Translations under genes and position numbers: made by a program | Notes under the pieces: generated by a model | What the model saw: only the letters and a program-made list of their open reading frames with translations | The model's database searches: none | Told to the model about the DNA's origin: nothing | Sequence record: NC_019408.1 | Strand: one strand, 5' to 3' | DNA: 64,000 bases | Shown here: piece by piece, positions 47,977 through 53,907 of the stretch | Numbering within the stretch: position 1 is the first letter of the stretch | How the letters are laid out: each line of letters begins with the position of its first letter

Positions 47977-48081
47977 TGGGGAGAGCCGGGTGGGGCTTTG
48001 TATCGCTGGGGGAGCGAGGGACGGGCCGCTCCCCGGCGGCCCACCCGCTCTTTATAGACGGCCCTTTCCCGGCCCGCAAGA

Positions 48082-48118
48082 CGTGAATCTTGACATGGTG
48101 GAAGATCGGGGTTAACCT
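48082..48118 (+). promoter_or_regulatory. CGTGAATC-TTGACA promoter
   Basis: TTGACA-N17-TAACCT. Confidence 0.75.
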
Positions 48119-48148
48119 GCGCGCTCATCTGGAGTTTCGAGCGCCACC

Positions 48149-48412
48149 ATGGCTGAGCTTGTCCGCATCTATCACCCTGAGACGAACGAGCCGTTCGACG
48201 TGATCCCGTCGACCGCCGAACGTCTGCGCCTGGGTGATGGTCCCGACGGGCTGGTCTGGCTCTCGCAGCCCTTCGAGCGCGTCGCTGTCGAAGCCGCGCC
48301 GGAAGCCCCCAAGGGGCGAGGTCGTAAGCGCGTCAGCGCGCCCGTCTCGGAAGAAGCCGAAGACGACGGGTGGCGTGACGTGCCGACCGAGGAAGATCGC
48401 GAAGCCGCGTAA
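48149..48412 (+). CDS. Hypothetical protein
   Basis: 87 aa; codon bias. Confidence 0.65.
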   Translation: MAELVRIYHPETNEPFDVIPSTAERLRLGDGPDGLVWLSQPFERVAVEAAPEAPKGRGRKRVSAPVSEEAEDDGWRDVPTEEDREAA

Positions 48413-48465
48413 GCCGCGTAAGGCGCTTCGTCTTCCACTCTGCTGAAATTCGGTCTCAGTCCCAT

Positions 48466-48541
48466 GTCGGTCTAGCTCATGGGGTAGAGCGGCGGTCTCC
48501 AAAACCGCGCGTGGCAGGTTCGAGTCCTGCGTCCGGCGCCA
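48466..48541 (+). tRNA. tRNA-Trp(CCA)
   Basis: GCGGT-CTCCAAA-ACCGC arm; TTCGA T-loop; encoded CCA. Confidence 0.9.
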
Positions 48542-48546
48542 TTTCG

Positions 48547-48620
48547 CATCCGTAGTATATAGGTGATTACAGCGCGTTGCCAACGCGTAGAGTCGGGTTC
48601 GAGTCCCGACGGATGCTCCA
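48547..48620 (+). tRNA. tRNA-Gly(GCC)
   Basis: GCGCG-TTGCCAA-CGCGT. Confidence 0.9.
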
Positions 48621-48624
48621 TTTC

Positions 48625-48698
48625 GCGGGTATAGCTCAAAGGGAGAGTTGCTGCCTTCCAAGCAGAAGATGCGAGTTCGAGCCTCGCTATCCGCTCCA
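48625..48698 (+). tRNA. tRNA-Gly(TCC)
   Basis: CTGC-CTTCCAA-GCAG. Confidence 0.9.
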
Positions 48699-49006
48699 AC
48701 CTCGTGGTGAGGTGAGAACGCCCTCCTCATGCACCGCTTCGGCGGTAAAGTAGGCTCCAGCCGAAGAGATGCGGGACCAGGGGACCCCGCCACCACGAAC
48801 GAAGTGCGCCCCAGGTACGCCTCTGACCGAGAAAGCCCGCTGGCCGTGGGTGAAGTGTATGGTCAAGCGTCTGGGTCCCCGTCCGCCAGGACCGGCGAAG
48901 GCCATATGCGCCGAATTCCTGGACCGGATCGTAGGAGGGGAGCGTTGGCGCCGGCCCAGCAGGGAAGGGTGAAGAGCCCAGCCGGCAATTTTCTTCAACA
49001 ACAAGC

Positions 49007-49035
49007 TTGACAGCCGTCGAGTTTCGTGAGAGCCT
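49007..49035 (+). promoter_or_regulatory. Sigma70-type promoter P1
   Basis: TTGACA..CGTCG....GTGAGAGC, nearly the same as P2. Confidence 0.7.
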
Positions 49036-49045
49036 CCTCAACATT

Positions 49046-49108
49046 ATGACGCACCTCCTCACCCGTTACGAACGCGAGGCCACCGGCCTCGATACCACCA
49101 CCGCCTAA
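49046..49108 (+). CDS. Candidate leader peptide MTHLLTRYEREATGLDTTTA
   Basis: Near-leaderless ATG after P1; stop codon lies in a hairpin loop; upstream of tRNA-Glu and tRNA-Asp. Confidence 0.5.
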   Translation: MTHLLTRYEREATGLDTTTA

Positions 49109-49140
49109 AAGCGGTTTTGGTCCGAGGCCTCTTGTGATGT

Positions 49141-49218
49141 GGCCCGGTCGTCTAGCGGTTTGCAGGATTCCTGACTTTCAATCAGGAGAGCGGAGTTCGA
49201 GTCTCCGTCGGGCTTCCA
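49141..49218 (+). tRNA. tRNA-Glu(TTC)
   Basis: CCTGA-CTTTCAA-TCAGG. Confidence 0.9.
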
Positions 49219-49243
49219 CACCCCCAACTCATCTCTGAGCTTT

Positions 49244-49318
49244 GGTGCCGTCGTATATGGGTTATTATCACCGGCTGTCTCCCGGTGGAAACGGGTTCGA
49301 GTCCCGTCGGCATCGCCA
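49244..49318 (+). tRNA. tRNA-Asp(GTC)
   Basis: ACCGG-CTGTCTC-CCGGT. Confidence 0.9.
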
Positions 49319-49381
49319 GCCCTCGCAGCAAATCCAGGTTCCAGCGCGGCTGTTCCGCGCGCCTGCATGCACGAGGCTACC

Positions 49382-49603
49382 ATGTTTTTCGATCCCTCCT
49401 CGCAGTCGAGCGACGCGCTCCTGCGCCACGTCTCCACCCAATCTCCGTATGCGGAAGCGGCTCGCACCGAGTTGCTGTCCCGAGGCCTCGTTCCGCTCCT
49501 GACGCGGTTCAACGGCTGGCGCCTCGCCCCGAGCGCGCCGTTTCCGCAGCACCTCATCCCGCGCCCCGATCCGCTCGCGAAGTACACGTGGCGGGCGGGA
49601 TGA
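49382..49603 (+). CDS. Hypothetical protein
   Basis: GAGG RBS; 73 aa. Confidence 0.5.
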   Translation: MFFDPSSQSSDALLRHVSTQSPYAEAARTELLSRGLVPLLTRFNGWRLAPSAPFPQHLIPRPDPLAKYTWRAG

Positions 49604-49622
49604 AAAATATTCACCACGACGC

Positions 49623-49651
49623 TTGACATCCGTCGGGAGTTGTGAGAGCTT
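49623..49651 (+). promoter_or_regulatory. Sigma70-type promoter P2
   Basis: TTGACATCCGTCGGGAGTTGTGAGAGCTT. Confidence 0.7.
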
Positions 49652-49744
49652 ATGGACTGTCACGGATCACGACACTCCTCGGAGTGCAAAAGCGTGATCC
49701 TTCGTTTTTCACGGCCGCCAGCGGGTGGCCAGTCGAGAGTTGTC

Positions 49745-49882
49745 ATGTTCGCCTTGTCGCATCTCAGCCTGAGCACGAAAGCCGCCTCCCCGGCGACGCT
49801 TTCGCTTGCCCTGCTGGCGACGGCCGCGAAGCCCTCGACCAAGCCGACCACCTCGGCCTCGCACTCGACGGAGACCCACTAG
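49745..49882 (+). CDS. Leader peptide of tRNA array A (45 aa)
   Basis: 42 of 44 codons after Met encode P/T/K/L/H/A/S, the amino acids of the 14 downstream tRNAs. Confidence 0.8.
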   Translation: MFALSHLSLSTKAASPATLSLALLATAAKPSTKPTTSASHSTETH

Positions 49883-49946
49883 GGCTCTCGTCTCGGGTGC
49901 AGGCCTTGGAGCCGCACCCGCTACCTACATCCTGTAGACCTAGCGC

Positions 49947-49985
49947 AAGGCGGCTCCTCACCAGGGAGACCGCCTTTTCTTTTTC
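49947..49985 (+). terminator. Attenuator terminator before array A
   Basis: AAGGCGGCTCC/GGAGACCGCCTT stem followed by TTCTTTTT. Confidence 0.85.
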
Positions 49986-49996
49986 GCGTTGATCAT

Positions 49997-50072
49997 CGGG
50001 GTGTAGCTCAGTCGGTAGAGCGCTCGGTTCGGGACCGAGAGGCCGTGGGTTCGAGTCCCGCCACCCAGACCA
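49997..50072 (+). tRNA. tRNA-Pro(CGG)
   Basis: CTCGG-TTCGGGA-CCGAG. Confidence 0.9.
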
Positions 50073-50079
50073 ACGCCAT

Positions 50080-50156
50080 CGGGATGTAGCTCAGTTTGGG
50101 AGAGCGCGCGGCTGGGGGCCGCGAGGCCGCAGGTTCAAGTCCTGCCACCCCGACCA
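50080..50156 (+). tRNA. tRNA-Pro(GGG)
   Basis: CGCGG-CTGGGGG-CCGCG. Confidence 0.9.
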
Positions 50157-50161
50157 ACAAC

Positions 50162-50234
50162 GCTGTTGCGCGTGGCTTCGCGCCCACCCCTTGGTATGGG
50201 GCGGTAGAAGGTTCAATTCCTTCCAGCAGCACCA
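50162..50234 (+). tRNA. tRNA-Thr(GGT), reduced D-arm
   Basis: CCCC-TTGGTAT-GGGG; GCTGTTG/CAGCAGC acceptor. Confidence 0.75.
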
Positions 50235-50239
50235 ACAAC

Positions 50240-50309
50240 GCCGATGCCTCTGGGAGGACGCGCCTTTCGTAAGGGTGCGAGGTGGGTTCAATCCCCACTT
50301 TCGGCTCCA
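50240..50309 (+). tRNA. tRNA-Thr(CGT), compact
   Basis: CGCGCCT-TTCGTAA-GGGTGCG; 3-nt D-loop. Confidence 0.72.
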
Positions 50310-50364
50310 TCAAACAGCCTGCGGGCTATATCGGAGATCAAGTTTCATAGCCTCCAGGCTATAT

Positions 50365-50451
50365 GGATGTGTCACCTCAGTGGCGAGAGGAACGGGCTCT
50401 TAATCCGTCAGCGCAAGCTCACCGTGGGTTCGAGTCCCACCACATCCTCCA
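50365..50451 (+). tRNA. tRNA-Lys(CTT), long variable arm
   Basis: ACGGG-CTCTTAA-TCCGT. Confidence 0.85.
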
Positions 50452-50456
50452 ACAAT

Positions 50457-50546
50457 GCACAAGTGACCCGAGCGGCGAAGGGCGTCGACTTTTAATCGAC
50501 TAGGCGTCCAGCCTCACCGAGGGTTCGAGTCCCTCCTTGTGCTCCA
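50457..50546 (+). tRNA. tRNA-Lys(TTT), long variable arm
   Basis: GTCGA-CTTTTAA-TCGAC. Confidence 0.85.
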
Positions 50547-50549
50547 TGT

Positions 50550-50636
50550 GCGAATGTGGCGGAACTGGTAGACGCGCCGGCCTCAGGTGCCGGTGCCCTT
50601 CGGGGCGTGTGGGTTCGAGTCCCACCTTTCGTACCA
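50550..50636 (+). tRNA. tRNA-Leu(CAG)
   Basis: CCGGC-CTCAGGT-GCCGG. Confidence 0.9.
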
Positions 50637-50643
50637 ACGACAT

Positions 50644-50731
50644 GCCTTGCTGGCGGAAGTGGTAGACGCACTGTTCTCAAAAAGCAGGCCGGGCGACCGG
50701 GCTCTGGGTTCGATCCCCAGGTGAGGCACCA
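50644..50731 (+). tRNA. tRNA-Leu(CAA)
   Basis: CTGTT-CTCAAAA-AGCAG. Confidence 0.9.
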
Positions 50732-50738
50732 AGACTGA

Positions 50739-50826
50739 TGCGAAGTGGCGGAAACTGGTAGACGCACCGGCATGAGAGGCCGGCGCCCTTCGGGGCGTGA
50801 GGGTTCGAGTCCCTTCTTCGCGACCA
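50739..50826 (+). tRNA. tRNA-Leu(GAG)
   Basis: CCGGC-ATGAGAG-GCCGG. Confidence 0.88.
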
Positions 50827-50906
50827 ATGTCCCGATCGGGAAGATTCCAGGCGGCGCGGCGCTCGCGACACCCGGATTTTCCCGATCGGGAAGACGACGA
50901 GATTAT

Positions 50907-50977
50907 GCTGATCGCCGCTGGGCGGGGAGCGGGTTGTGTCCCCGCTAGGCACGGTTCGATCCCGTGGGTCAGTACCA
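50907..50977 (+). tRNA. tRNA-His(GTG), compact, no G-1, A73
   Basis: AGCGGG-TTGTGTC-CCCGCT; absence of G-1 matches the Caulobacter-type tRNA-His. Confidence 0.75.
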
Positions 50978-50982
50978 GATAC

Positions 50983-51053
50983 GGGGTATGCGCAGGGCGC
51001 AGGCATCCTTTGCAAGGAAGTCGGGGTGGGTTCGAGTCCCACATACTCCACCA
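50983..51053 (+). tRNA. tRNA-Ala(TGC), compact D-arm
   Basis: CATCC-TTTGCAA-GGAAG; GGGGTAT/ATACTCC acceptor includes G3-U70. Confidence 0.75.
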
Positions 51054-51057
51054 ACAT

Positions 51058-51147
51058 GGAAGGTCAACCGGACAGGCGCGCCGGGACTGCCTCGAAAGCA
51101 GATCGCACTCTCCGGGGTGTGGGGATCGAGACCTCGGCCTTCCTCCA
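51058..51147 (+). tRNA. tRNA-Ser(CGA)
   Basis: CTGC-CTCGAAA-GCAG; long variable arm. Confidence 0.88.
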
Positions 51148-51151
51148 ATAT

Positions 51152-51241
51152 GGTGAGCGAACGGGACAGGCGTGCCCGGTCCGCCTGGAAAGCGCGACGC
51201 ACTCTCCGGGGTGTGGGATTCGAGTTCTCCGCTCACCGCCA
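51152..51241 (+). tRNA. tRNA-Ser(GGA)
   Basis: CGC-CTGGAAA-GCG; long variable arm. Confidence 0.88.
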
Positions 51242-51245
51242 ACAG

Positions 51246-51336
51246 GGTAGGCGAACCGGACAGGCGCGCCGGCGCCGTTTGCTAAACGAGCGGCACTCTC
51301 CGGGGGTGTGGGATTCAAGCTCTCCGCCTACCGCCA
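51246..51336 (+). tRNA. tRNA-Ser(GCT)
   Basis: CGT-TTGCTAA-ACG; long variable arm. Confidence 0.88.
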
Positions 51337-51612
51337 TTTTGATGTTGACGCCGGCCAGCACCGATGTCATACGTCACGACAGAGCCAACGCCCTCGGCCG
51401 GGTTGGTGGATGTGCCGGTTGCATCGCGCCCCGTCGAGCCCTAGTAGCTCTTGCCGTGGAGTTTTCCGCCTCCCTCCCAGACAAGGAGGCGGACCCCTAC
51501 ATCGCGATCCAGTGATCGTCGGCGACGGGCGCCGTCAGAGCCCCTTGCGCGCGGGAACGCTGCGGAGGGGATCGTCCCGACCACATTTTTCGACCCACGT
51601 TAACTTTTCTTC

Positions 51613-51641
51613 TTGACCTTCCCGAAAACGTAGTGTAGCTT
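51613..51641 (+). promoter_or_regulatory. Sigma70-type promoter P3
   Basis: TTGACC-N17-TAGCTT; predicted start site about 51648, so the ATG is leaderless. Confidence 0.75.
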
Positions 51642-51648
51642 TCCCGTC

Positions 51649-51744
51649 ATGAGCAAGTCGTACCGTCAATTCGTGCAGATTCAGGTCGTCCGGAATTTCC
51701 GGGCGGGCCGTTCGCGCATGGATGATGGCGGGACCTTTATCTAG
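51649..51744 (+). CDS. Leader peptide of tRNA array B (31 aa)
   Basis: Codons 5-18 (YRQFVQIQVVRNFR) are all read by tRNAs of the downstream array. Confidence 0.8.
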   Translation: MSKSYRQFVQIQVVRNFRAGRSRMDDGGTFI

Positions 51745-51770
51745 GTCCAGACACCTCAACCCAATTCGCG

Positions 51771-51810
51771 AAAGGCCCGCCTGGACACCCAGGCGGGCCT
51801 TTTTCTTTTT
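51771..51810 (+). terminator. Attenuator terminator before array B
   Basis: AAAGGCCCGCCTGG-ACAC-CCAGGCGGGCCTTT followed by TTCTTTTT. Confidence 0.9.
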
Positions 51811-51867
51811 CCGTTTCGCTGATCCGCAGGAGATCGCAGATGAACAACGGGGGCTAGTCCTCCACAT

Positions 51868-51952
51868 GGATGCTTAAAGCTGGAGGGCTCCAGCCGGGGG
51901 CTGTAAACCCCCTCTCTTCGGAGGAGTGGTTCGATCCCACAAGCATCCACCA
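51868..51952 (+). tRNA. tRNA-Tyr(GTA)
   Basis: GGGGG-CTGTAAA-CCCCC; long variable arm. Confidence 0.88.
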
Positions 51953-51957
51953 ATCAT

Positions 51958-52033
51958 GGACTCGTAGCTCAGCAGGTAGAGCGCCGGCTTGAAACCCCGG
52001 AGGTCGGAGGTTCGATTCCTCCCGTTTCCACCA
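51958..52033 (+). tRNA. tRNA-Phe(GAA)
   Basis: Canonical spacing gives loop TTGAAAC; C31-C39 mismatch. Confidence 0.85.
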
Positions 52034-52038
52034 ACAAC

Positions 52039-52114
52039 GCCCGATGAGCCAGATGGGAAGGCACCGCTTTGACATGGCGGCATTGAGAAGGTTCGATTCC
52101 TTCATCAGGCACCA
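52039..52114 (+). tRNA. tRNA-Val(GAC)
   Basis: CCGCT-TTGACAT-GGCGG. Confidence 0.88.
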
Positions 52115-52119
52115 ACCAC

Positions 52120-52195
52120 GCAAGTGTAGCTCAGTTGGTAGAGCAGCGGACCGATAATCCGCCCGTCCCTGGTTCGAGTCCAGGCATTTGCACCA
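52120..52195 (+). tRNA. tRNA-Ile(GAT)
   Basis: GCGGA-CCGATAA-TCCGC (C33). Confidence 0.88.
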
Positions 52196-52202
52196 TTTCT
52201 GA

Positions 52203-52278
52203 TGTGGCATAGCTCAGGGGTCAGAGCGCGCGCTTGATAAGCGTGAGGTCGGTGGTTCGAGACCACCTGTCACTACCA
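52203..52278 (+). tRNA. tRNA-Ile(GAT)
   Basis: CGCGC-TTGATAA-GCGTG. Confidence 0.88.
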
Positions 52279-52312
52279 ATTCCCAGGCCCGGTGGAGATG
52301 CGCCGGTTCTGT

Positions 52313-52386
52313 AGGCGATTAGCTCAATGGTAGAGCAGGGGTGCCACATACCTCGGTCGTAGGTTCGATTCCTACATCGCCCACCA
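52313..52386 (+). tRNA. tRNA-Val(CAC), atypical G32/C33
   Basis: GGGGT-GCCACAT-ACCTC. Confidence 0.78.
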
Positions 52387-52392
52387 ACATGT

Positions 52393-52466
52393 TGAGGGTT
52401 CGTCTAACGGTAGGACGCCTGGGTCTGGTCCAGGTAATCTAGGTTCGAGTCCTAGCCCCTCATCCA
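52393..52466 (+). tRNA. tRNA-Gln(CTG)
   Basis: CCTGG-GTCTGGT-CCAGG. Confidence 0.88.
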
Positions 52467-52472
52467 AGTTGT

Positions 52473-52547
52473 TCTCGGGTCGTCTAATGGTAAGACATCT
52501 GGTTTTGGTCCAGAGGATTGGGGTTCGATTCCTTGGCCGAGAGCCAA
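52473..52547 (+). tRNA. tRNA-Gln(TTG)
   Basis: TCTGG-TTTTGGT-CCAGA. Confidence 0.88.
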
Positions 52548-52563
52548 CTGCTTTAGAGTTCAT

Positions 52564-52637
52564 TCCAGTCAATGCACAAGGTGTGCAGCGGCACTGTTAA
52601 TGCCTGTGAGCCCGGTTCGATTCCGGGGTCTGGAGCC
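52564..52637 (+). tRNA. tRNA-Asn(GTT)
   Basis: GGCA-CTGTTAA-TGCC. Confidence 0.88.
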
Positions 52638-52663
52638 AACACGCCGGCCAAGGCCGGTCATGC

Positions 52664-52746
52664 GCCCTGGTAACCGAGGGGGATTACGAATCCCTTAGTC
52701 GTAGCAGGAGTTGAAAAGGGTGGTTCGAATCCACTCCAGGGTGCCA
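52664..52746 (+). tRNA. tRNA-Arg(ACG)-like, no D-arm, long variable region
   Basis: GCCCTGG/CCAGGGT acceptor; GGGA-TTACGAA-TCCC; intact T-arm and CCA. Confidence 0.6.
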
Positions 52747-52753
52747 AATCTAT

Positions 52754-52836
52754 AGCGCGCAGGCCGATCAGGATCATCGTCAGGCGTCGCCCTCCGAAGG
52801 CGAAGAGGCCCGGTTCGAGTCCGGGGCGCGCTGCCA
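52754..52836 (+). tRNA. tRNA-Arg(CCG), enlarged D-loop
   Basis: TCGCC-CTCCGAA-GGCGA. Confidence 0.8.
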
Positions 52837-52839
52837 ACT

Positions 52840-52917
52840 GCGCGGGTAGCTCAACGGAACCAGAGCAGCCGTCTTCTACACGGTGGGTTGGGGGTTCGAG
52901 TCCCTCCCCGTGCGCCA
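52840..52917 (+). tRNA. tRNA-Arg(TCT)
   Basis: GCCGT-CTTCTAC-ACGGT. Confidence 0.88.
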
Positions 52918-53254
52918 AAACTTGACGGGCAATGCCGAATCGCCCAACTTCGACCCTGGCTCTCGGTGGGCCACGATTGCACGCCGTCGGTGCCCTGGCC
53001 GTACACCCAGGGAGCAGCCCGGCGGCGTTCCAACACGGTTTCTGGACGATCTTCGAACGCGGCTTGCCGTGGAGGGGTGCTGGATAGGGCCGAGGTAGGA
53101 GGAACCATCGAGCATCTCCTAATCCCGGCCTGGGCCTCCTGGGGGCTCCGCTGGGTCGATCAGGGCCTGACCCGACCCCGGAGATGCGCCGACCTAGATC
53201 ACCCAGGATCGCTGGGTCGGTTGAAAGGGTCTGAAATTTTCTGGCTCCTATGTG

Positions 53255-53285
53255 TTGACACGCATTTCGGAGCCGGCTACAACCC
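53255..53285 (+). promoter_or_regulatory. Sigma70 promoter with no downstream ORF
   Basis: TTGACA-N17-TACAAC (GCTACAAC). Confidence 0.7.
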
Positions 53286-53424
53286 TCCTCGTAGAGCGGC
53301 GCTGGGGCCTGAAGGCCCCAATCGTTGAGCCTCTGCGTTGTCGTCAGAAACGGCCCGCCGGCATCCCGCCGCGCGGGCCGTTTCGTCATGGGCGTCATGC
53401 GACCTTGAGTCCACCGTGGGTAGT

Positions 53425-53463
53425 GTCGTGAATCTTGACTTTCGACCACCTTTCCGGTAGCTT
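53425..53463 (+). promoter_or_regulatory. GTCGTGAATC-TTGACT promoter
   Basis: N17 then TAGCTT. Confidence 0.75.
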
Positions 53464-53508
53464 CCCCTTCATCACCAACGCTCATAAGTCGGGGACTAGA
53501 GAGCCGAT

Positions 53509-53907
53509 ATGTCGCAAGACCACACCGGCTCCGCAACGCAGAGCCAAGAACACATCTTTCGTAAGCTGGATGAGCTTGGCGCAATGCACATGCGTACCCG
53601 CGAGGACATGGCCGAAGTCAAGGAGAAGGTGAAGACCATCGCCTCCTCTCAGGAGCGCTTTGAGCGCGACGTTTGGCGCGAGATGGACATTCGCCACGCC
53701 GAGACCAAGGAGCAACTGGCCGCCATCAAGAATCAAACCGCCGATCGGATCGACGAGATCGAGGCCAAGGTGAACACCATTCGCGAGGAGCGGATCGCCG
53801 AAAAAGCCCAGTGGCGTGGCCCCGAGAAGGTCATTGCCGGCATCGTCGCCCTGGCGGGCGGCGTCACCGCGATCGGCGTTCTCTGGAGCATCTTCAAACC
53901 CCACTAA
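53509..53907 (+). CDS. Coiled-coil protein with a C-terminal transmembrane helix
   Basis: Helical body; IAGIVALAGGVTAIGVLWSIF. Confidence 0.7.
   Translation: MSQDHTGSATQSQEHIFRKLDELGAMHMRTREDMAEVKEKVKTIASSQERFERDVWREMDIRHAETKEQLAAIKNQTADRIDEIEAKVNTIREERIAEKAQWRGPEKVIAGIVALAGGVTAIGVLWSIFKPH

Follow-up and report, generated by a model that had tools for sequence, protein, structure and literature searches.

The DNA considered here is the first part (bases 1-64000) of the genome of Caulobacter phage CcrRogue (NC_019408/JX100814), a Poindextervirus of the Dolichocephalovirinae and one of the phiCbK-like prolate siphophages. This whole 64-kb stretch is referred to as the window; the 5.5 kb around the ORF described next match that record with 100% identity at equal coordinates, and the leader units and tRNA arrays given below lie on the plus strand of the window. 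An open reading frame (ORF) of 45 codons at 49745-49882, labelled in the record only as hypothetical protein gp349, precedes an array of 14 tRNA genes (array A, 49997-51336) and is called leader A here. Comparison of sequences suggests, with a probability of about 0.8, that leader A and the structures following it constitute a ribosome-mediated transcription attenuator that senses tRNA supply and controls array A. An earlier note on the same DNA had put forward a leader-peptide attenuator for this array, and the frame of the ORF, its composition, the terminator and the alternative helices were all found as that proposal predicted, which argues in its favour.

Amino acid composition of leader A and the downstream tRNA array

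The peptide encoded at 49745-49882 is MFALSHLSLSTKAASPATLSLALLATAAKPSTKPTTSASHSTETH, as had been read earlier. After the initial Met, 42 of its 44 codons specify P, T, K, L, H, A or S (set A), and only F2 and E43 fall outside this set. The 14 tRNA genes downstream, also claimed in the earlier note and confirmed here by ARAGORN at a relaxed threshold, serve exactly these seven amino acids: Pro (two genes, anticodons CGG and GGG), Thr (two, GGT and CGT), Lys (two, CTT and TTT), Leu (three, CAG, CAA and GAG), His (GTG), Ala (TGC) and Ser (three, CGA, GGA and GCT). At default settings ARAGORN reports 11 tRNAs at 49997-51053, while Thr-CGT and the three Ser genes, which are 94-nt tandem copies, are added at the relaxed threshold.

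Comparison with the other frames of the window showed how exceptional this composition is. All six frames were divided into stop-free windows of 44 codons, and among these 63,113 windows leader A ranks first; the runner-up locus, an off-frame Ser/Thr/Pro stretch, reaches 39/44. Set-A residues make up 44.9% of the residues in 31 putative genes of the window, from which the binomial probability of 42/44 is 7e-13. The match of leader A to array A at the level of amino acids is overwhelming.

At the level of codons the match is only suggestive. The claim that leader A samples nearly every anticodon of the array is literally true, since it includes 13 of the 14 codons that are exact Watson-Crick cognates; the only one missing is GCA, Ala being written as GCC or GCG. 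AAA and TTG, both present, are indeed uncommon, with 8% of Lys codons and 9% of Leu codons, respectively. Coverage of 13/14 was reached at one other locus only. However, when the composition is drawn from set A alone, at least 13 of 14 exact cognates are obtained with P = 0.05, and the sampling of anticodons is thus only marginal beyond the amino acid match.

Conservation of leader A across phages

All genomes of Shapirovirus and Poindextervirus contain the ORF, with a length of 138 nt in most of them and of 147 nt in Ccr10, where a 9-nt in-frame insertion adds codons that again belong to set A. Nine distinct close sequences differ in the core of the ORF by 2 synonymous and 17 non-synonymous codon variants, and 16 of the latter 17 stay within P/T/K/L/H/A/S, against a null expectation of 0.47 for single-base non-synonymous changes (P = 6e-5). 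Several variants, ACG to CTG and ACC to CAC among them, differ at two or three bases. Because nearly all variants remain in the set and only two are synonymous, selection acts on composition rather than on the sequence of the peptide, as would be expected of a sensing leader but not of a folded protein.

The same data bear on whether gp349 is instead a small functional protein of low complexity, disordered or secreted, with the tRNA genes nearby by coincidence and the downstream hairpin simply ending its gene. Homologues of gp349 are annotated as coding sequences in nearly every genome, and low-complexity Ser/Thr/Ala/Pro stretches with up to 39/44 residues in the set do occur in other frames of the genome. 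A protein of this kind is nevertheless very improbable, because the 17 non-synonymous against 2 synonymous variants and the free exchange within the set give no sign of purifying selection on its sequence. Moreover, a protein function would predict neither two further mini-ORFs matching two further arrays nor a leader that splits when its array is split, both of which are described below.

Sensitive blastn searches with the leader DNA of CcrRogue gave no match beyond Shapirovirus and Poindextervirus phages. Ten lineages of Dolichocephalovirinae were compared, several of which cannot be aligned in DNA, and in all other lineages examined a mini-ORF of set-A composition (84-95% in set) was found ahead of the first tRNA-Pro. 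In-set residues number 35/38 in Colossus, 38/41 in Bajun, 39/44 in Kikimora, 37/43 in Bambus, 32/38 in CcrSC and CcrBL9, which have the same leader, and 33/36 in the metagenomic contig L022. The frame of leader A is the sole one of six that is open across all ten lineages, and in the isolates measured its stop codon lies 112-119 nt ahead of the tRNA. Residues outside the set are concentrated at the 3' end of the ORF, in the sequence of helix 1 (see below). L022 was the only informative genome obtained by searching IMG/VR with the neighbouring PhoH gene, a search that returned mainly unrelated phages; contig L023, found in the same way and carrying different arrays, has no such leaders.

Division of leaders and arrays in relatives

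The strongest comparative evidence comes from the divergent 279-kb phage contig IMGVR_UViG_3300001199_000001 (L122; 54.6% GC), found with a DNA pattern derived from the Glu/Asp leader described below. This pattern gave 27 matches in IMG/VR, most of which are there by chance, while L122, L115 and L126 are real. At 6400-11540 of L122, array A is divided into three units, Pro-Met-Thr-Lys, Leu and His-Ala-Ser, each of which has its own promoter-like site (TTGACA-N17-TAxxxx) and a leader that matches only its own tRNAs. A hairpin with a T-run is seen behind the first and third leaders. The Pro-Met-Thr-Lys (PMTK) leader, ITKTTTPMTMKPTKP, stands ahead of three Pro, one Met, three Thr and one Lys tRNA genes and has 14 of 15 residues in the set, compared with 9/15 at the next locus; it reads MITKTTTPMTMKPTKP... 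and contains all eight exact cognate codons. The Leu leader, ...TLLLLS..., ahead of five Leu tRNA genes, carries four successive and different Leu codons (TTA TTG CTA CTT). Finally, the His-Ala-Ser (HAS) leader MIKTATHSSAHSSAASAASSTAARAVSASASSLS precedes tRNA genes for His, Ala (three) and Ser (four), with H, A or S at 25 of 33 positions and 15/33 at the next locus. We regard this division of the leader along with the array, as read from the contig, as the decisive comparative argument that the composition of a leader follows which tRNAs stand behind it.

Smaller differences between arrays were also compared with their leaders. L022 has Glu-Asp-Cys tRNAs, and the Glu/Asp leader ahead of them carries a lineage-specific insert that contributes three Cys codons and an Asp codon. 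In Bertelyviruses a tRNA-Trp stands at the end of array A and leader A has a TGG in the middle of the ORF; this is a single data point because the leaders of CcrSC and CcrBL9 are identical. In Bambus a Trp codon is found near the stop codon of the leader, and the array includes no tRNA for Trp. For this amino acid, covariation is therefore a weak hint.

Leaders of array B and of the Glu/Asp pair

A second unit of the same kind is located at 51613-51815, downstream of array A. A promoter-like site (TTGACC-N17-TAGCTT, 51613-41) is followed by an ORF at 51649-51744 (leader B) and a terminator at 51770-51803 with a T-tract. Leader B is unannotated and has 31 codons, and it appears near-leaderless since it begins 7 nt past the promoter-like site. 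Its residues 5-18, YRQFVQIQVVRNFR, consist solely of Y, R, Q, F, V, I and N, and all seven are used; the next longest run of this set in the six frames of the window has 10 residues of just 3 amino acids. Sets A and B share no amino acid. All 8 lineages have this run, at a length of 14-15 residues and with its order shuffled within the set, for example YRNNVRQIRVRQFN and YRQNVQNIRVVRFNR, and the ORF is found in 45 phage records, where it is almost never annotated. Array B downstream (51868-52917) comprises Tyr-like, Phe, Val, two Ile, Val, two Gln, Asn, Arg ACG, Arg CCG and Arg TCT tRNA genes. For Tyr, Asn, Arg ACG and Arg CCG the identity was taken by eye from the anticodon loop, the others coming from relaxed ARAGORN; homologues have been annotated in Bajun, Kikimora, Colossus and CcrPW.

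RNA folding of leader B predicts an antiterminator of 18 bp (about 51698-51716 with 51767-51785) that competes with the 15-bp terminator hairpin at 51770-51803. The untranslated RNA is predicted to form helix 1:2 and the terminator; when the regulatory codons are masked the antiterminator forms instead of the terminator, and with the ribosome further along or at the stop codon the terminator returns, all z-scores being -5 or below. In these predicted folds, leader B is a textbook four-region attenuator, with a clear polarity in which stalling leads to readthrough.

The third unit, at 49007-49108, contains a promoter-like site (TTGACA-N13-CGTGAGA, 49007-31) and a 20-codon ORF at 49046-49108, MTHLLTRYEREATGLDTTTA, directly ahead of tRNA-Glu and tRNA-Asp (49141-49318). 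The stop codon of this ORF lies in a hairpin loop. A core E-R/S-E...D-T is kept in most lineages, and for the internal hairpin of this leader the pairing is kept among lineages while its sequence varies.

These units also bear on chance as an explanation, that is, a GC-rich off-frame ORF which happens to be rich in common amino acids, in RNA whose GC content always offers alternative pairings. It has some basis, as set A accounts for 45% of residues and takes in all codons whose second base is C, sequence of 63% GC often allows alternative helices, and the complements found in phages other than CcrRogue are singly non-significant. On the other hand, leader A is the single top window of 63,113 and contains neither Arg nor Gly, residues that abound in off-frames; its frame is open in 10 lineages, and array-specific matches are repeated in the sister units and in L122. 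Taken with these facts, chance is an exceedingly improbable explanation.

Promoter region and 5' part of the leader A unit

Upstream of leader A, a putative promoter (P_A, 49623-49651) consists of TTGACA (49623-28), a 17-nt spacer and GAGCTT (49646-51), with a conserved TGTGAGAG element. The motif TTGAC-N13-YGTGAGA has exactly two copies in the 64 kb, at 49623 in P_A and at 49007 before tRNA-Glu, and it is also found upstream of leader A in Colossus and Bajun. A generic sigma-70 scan of the window did not call P_A; its conserved motif suggests that it acts as a promoter. An in-frame ATG further upstream, at 49652, would give a 76-aa ORF. It was rejected as the start codon on two grounds, overlap with the putative -10 element and absence of conservation within the phiCbK group.

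Between P_A and leader A, a 5'-proximal hairpin at 49664-49710 (GGATCACG...CGTGATCC, with an inner CACTCC/GGAGTG stem) is followed by the U-rich tract TTCGTTTTTC. It is kept in the phiCbK group with one compensatory change (Ccr10), and Bajun and CcrSC have a small hairpin and U-rich tract in the equivalent position. This hairpin could be a stabiliser of the 5' end, a pause site or a first terminator.

Mutually exclusive structures behind leader A

The pairings that had been read by eye are present where they were placed, namely GCACTCGA (49861-68) with TCGGGTGC (49893-900), CGGGTGC with GCACCCG (49914-20), and GGAGCCGC (49908-15) with GCGGCTCC (49950-57). They belong to a series of helices formed by successive regions. 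In helix 1:2 (49855-49905) the final 9 codons of the ORF pair with the stretch right behind the stop codon, and the stop UAG lies in the apical loop. Helix 2:3 (49895-49919), made of GGGUGC/GCACCC and GGC/GCC, is an anti-antiterminator that ties up 5 of the 8 nt of the antiterminator strand. Helix 3:4 (49908-49957) is the antiterminator, in which 49908-15 pairs with GCGGCUCC at 49950-57 and encloses a small hairpin at 49920-49944. The last is an intrinsic terminator, T_A (49947-49985), with a 12-bp bulged hairpin at 49947-49976 (-19.5 kcal/mol) and then TTTTCTTTT.

T_A is located between leader A and the first tRNA gene, its hairpin and T-tract lying 65-94 nt past the stop codon. In phiCbK, Swift and Karma, TransTermHP annotations mark the homologous site as a rho-independent terminator; a simple terminator scan did not call T_A because the hairpin is bulged. 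A perfect 8-bp complement to the 5' arm of the terminator arises in the 64-nt spacer in 1.6% of dinucleotide shuffles. Brevundimonas phages have complements to their own terminator arms at stop+21 to stop+31, which are singly non-significant (P = 0.12-0.20). CGGGUGC...GCACCCG is found again in CcrSC, and a long hairpin that holds the stop codon in its apical loop is also seen, with differing sequences, in phiCbK, Bajun, Kikimora and CcrSC. The post-ORF region was also aligned across genera with MAFFT, but with a column identity of 62% and helices out of register this alignment was unsuited to counting covarying pairs, and helices were compared one lineage at a time.

Predicted folds of this region change with ribosome position. 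When region 1 is free (fold of 49855-49985), both the minimum free energy (MFE) structure and the centroid contain helix 1:2 and the antiterminator 49908-15:49950-57 (z = -5.2). When region 1 is removed, by starting the fold at 49893, where the front of a ribosome whose A site holds the stop codon would stand, both contain helix 2:3 and the terminator 49947-49976 (z = -4.2). With a sliding ribosome mask, the terminator has a probability of 0.9 or more once the A site is at codon 34 or beyond; its probability is low at codons 1-17 and 32-33 and intermediate between. Computational folding thus shows a complete set of mutually exclusive helices behind leader A. It had been proposed that an early stall would favour the antiterminator and arrival at the stop codon would favour the terminator; the predicted fold does flip when region 1 is masked, but the alternatives are nearly iso-energetic, and this polarity is an inference.

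Evidence against attenuation and alternative modes of control

Several observations weigh against an attenuator at array A, or against parts of it. In leader A, only about 1 kcal/mol separates the terminated from the antiterminated fold when region 1 is free, and an 8-nt shift of the 5' boundary flips the MFE structure. Before the 3' arm of the terminator is made, the truncated fold prefers the antiterminator at every ribosome position. Equilibrium masking profiles for Bajun, Kikimora and Bambus are inconsistent or noisy, without a clean switch, and no clear U-tract is found behind the leader A hairpins of Colossus and CcrSC. The terminator-like hairpin between P_A and the ORF is left unexplained by attenuation. 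On the side of the tRNAs, several in the arrays are non-canonical and below the threshold of the Rfam tRNA model, and they may not be functional; 7 of the 10 Ala codons in leader A are GCC, outside the standard wobble of the sole Ala tRNA of the array (UGC). Coverage of exact cognate codons, estimated by resampling of synonymous codons (conditional on composition in the case of CcrRogue), has P = 0.05 for leader A of CcrRogue, and 0.05, 0.59 and 0.78 for the PMTK, Leu and HAS leaders of L122, respectively.

The masking and truncated-fold results together mean that thermodynamics alone cannot fix the polarity of leader A. Because the folds are nearly iso-energetic and the truncated fold is insensitive to ribosome position, discrimination by leader A would be kinetic. 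By analogy with leader B and with classical attenuators, we infer such a kinetic operation and the same polarity for leader A.

An opposite polarity, in which efficient translation promotes readthrough, or a general sensor of translation capacity, in which any loss of translation turns the array on, would agree with some of the folds. Ribosome-free leader A is predicted to form helices 1:2 and 3:4, which means readthrough, and the terminator probability is 0.41 in CcrRogue and 0.01 in phiCbK. In Bajun, region 2 is so near the stop codon that a terminating ribosome would partly cover it, favouring the antiterminator. A general sensor, however, needs no tRNA-matched leader, nor three leaders per phage with non-overlapping compositions, and leader B is predicted to form a terminator when untranslated and an antiterminator only when its regulatory codons are masked, which is the classical polarity. 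We consider this explanation unlikely.

Matched and translated leaders might also act after transcription, with the position of the ribosome setting the processing or stability of the tRNA precursor or the access of Rho. The hairpins without U-tract after leader A in Colossus and CcrSC would fit such control, and the conserved stop codon in a hairpin loop could have another purpose. In most lineages, however, leaders A and B are followed by a canonical hairpin and U-tract with an overlapping complement upstream of each, and the chance that the leaders work after transcription instead seems small.

Proposed mechanism

In the attenuator favoured here, transcription would begin at P_A, and a ribosome coupled to RNA polymerase would translate the 45-codon leader, which calls for nearly nothing else than the seven amino acids of the downstream tRNAs. 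Scarcity of any set-A aminoacyl-tRNA, of host or phage origin, would stall the ribosome at about codons 2-32. Helix 1:2 would then form ahead of the ribosome, and region 3, left free, would pair with the 5' arm of the terminator (49908-15:49950-57). With this antiterminator in place, RNA polymerase would read into the 14 tRNA genes. When supply is ample, the ribosome would reach the last dozen codons and the stop codon and cover region 1, so that region 2 would pair with region 3; helices 2:3 and 4:5, the latter being the terminator 49947-49976 with its U-tract, would end transcription at about 49985, before the array. The product of the array would relieve the stall, and the circuit would therefore be a negative feedback, a homeostat of tRNA supply.

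The Glu/Asp pair, array A and array B would each have one leader module for their transcription unit, which watches the tRNAs of that unit, and the arrays would be switched on when host tRNAs become limiting during infection. Extending this, the phiCbK-like phages may carry a modular homeostat in which a leader gates every tRNA transcription unit by sampling, isoacceptor by isoacceptor, the codons of that unit's tRNAs; the arrays would remain silent with an intact host pool and be selectively induced upon depletion, as an inducible counter-defence. Depletion would come from the demand of the phage, from host shut-off or from tRNA-cleaving defence nucleases. This extension is tentative and, though possible, somewhat doubtful; if true, it would provide a natural set of codon-specific sensors of translation speed.

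The purpose of phage tRNAs has been debated for decades between codon compensation and replacement of degraded or cleaved host tRNAs. If the leaders work as proposed here, the arrays would be made on demand, when ribosomes stall for exactly those tRNAs. In addition, the PMTK, Leu, HAS, ED and YFVIQNR leaders could be used as codon- or tRNA-specific reporters of translation speed.

tRNA annotation and neighbouring features

Four stretches of the window hold tRNA-like genes that are absent or miscalled in the CcrRogue record (50239-50308, 50907-51336, 51868-51953 and 52551-52836). The genes concerned are Thr-CGT, His-GTG, Ala-TGC, Ser-CGA, Ser-GGA, Ser-GCT, a Tyr-GTA-like gene with an aberrant D arm, Asn-GTT, which default ARAGORN calls Ile-AAT, Arg-ACG and Arg-CCG. 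With these additions the tRNAs of CcrRogue cover 18 amino acids, leaving Met and Cys uncovered. The Rfam tRNA model did not detect Thr-CGT, His-GTG, the three Ser, the Tyr-like, Asn or Arg-CCG genes, and it gave sub-threshold scores to Ala-TGC and Arg-ACG. According to Gill et al. (2012), none of these phages has a Thr or Tyr tRNA, and Ser and Asp tRNAs are absent in Rogue. The gain in annotation is tRNA genes for about ten more anticodons than the record has, together with three conserved mini-ORFs, of which leader B and the Glu/Asp leader of Rogue are unannotated in most or all records seen.

Two further peculiarities were observed within array A. The tRNA-Lys genes CTT (50365-50451, 87 nt) and TTT (50457-50546, 90 nt) have a long variable arm like that of class II tRNAs (Ser/Leu/Tyr), which is unusual for tRNA-Lys and is kept across phiCbK-like phages. 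In the spacers, the palindromic 15-mer TCCCGATCGGGAAGA occurs in two exact copies 50 nt apart at 50830-50894, between tRNA-Leu-GAG and tRNA-His, and the spacer 50313-50364 has two copies of GGCTATAT.

Upstream of the Glu/Asp unit, a mini-leader was sought for the Trp-Gly-Gly tRNA block (48090-48465), and none was found; only the conserved 87-aa gp081 precedes it, with its own promoter-like site (TTGACA-N17-TAACCT) and a motif YHPETNEPF also present in L122. No terminator was found ahead of the tRNA-Trp of this block. A skipping-rope RNA (Rfam RF02924) was identified at 48702-48798, just after tRNA-Gly-TCC and upstream of the Glu/Asp promoter, with 45.8 bits against a gathering threshold of 36.7. 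The 2012 genome paper reported no Rfam elements other than tRNA.

Comparison with known systems

Enterobacterial leader attenuators include multivalent ones, such as ilvL of ilvGMEDA (Ile/Val/Leu) and thrL (Thr/Ile), as well as hisL, leuL, trpL and pheL. Leader A resembles them in having a short ORF between promoter and genes, diagnostic codons, an intrinsic terminator and an antiterminator over the 5' arm of that terminator, and in that the position of the ribosome would choose the structure; leader B would follow the four-region logic of trp, and the L122 Leu leader has four Leu codons in a row like leuL. The downstream genes of array A are tRNAs, outside the usual targets of attenuation, namely genes for amino acid biosynthesis, transport and synthetases. 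Thus, unlike the enterobacterial systems, this phage element would regulate tRNAs instead of biosynthetic enzymes, and its product would be the very molecule that the stalled ribosome awaits. Leader A also differs in being phage-encoded, in its five interacting segments, in the stop codon located in the loop of helix 1:2, and in its breadth, since its 42 in-set codons would watch seven amino acids, a number that no classical leader comes near.

Attenuation of a component of the translation apparatus has a precedent in E. coli, where the pheM leader attenuates pheST, encoding phenylalanyl-tRNA synthetase. Both would respond to aminoacyl-tRNA supply through a leader peptide, but pheM acts on a chromosomal synthetase gene and senses one amino acid, and no tRNA gene is controlled. 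T-box riboswitches (RF00230) likewise tie the status of a specific tRNA to transcription antitermination; they bind uncharged tRNA directly, by means of a specifier codon together with the T-box sequence, and need no translation, whereas leader A is an ORF and would need a ribosome. RF00230 had no match in 48000-53600 at the gathering threshold or at E <= 1, and no Rfam cis-regulatory family was found at any of the leaders. In the bacterial class of the phage host, Alphaproteobacteria, ribosome-dependent attenuation operates at trpL of Sinorhizobium meliloti (PMC6614838, PMC7298713), which differs in having a leader for a single amino acid and a biosynthetic operon.

Two readings of phage tRNA arrays have been offered, codon compensation and a counter to tRNA-targeting defence (PMC3556154; PMC10264068); these papers treat the same class of genes and give no account of how the arrays are regulated. 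The tRNA sets of phiCbK-like phages were listed by Gill et al. (2012), who matched them to frequent phage codons and made no mention of leaders or attenuation. Full-text searches of the literature turned up no account of leader-peptide control of tRNA genes, in phages or in cells, which is not proof of novelty. As far as that literature shows, array A would be the first case of leader-peptide attenuation of tRNA genes, and leader A, with seven amino acids, would be the most multivalent leader known.

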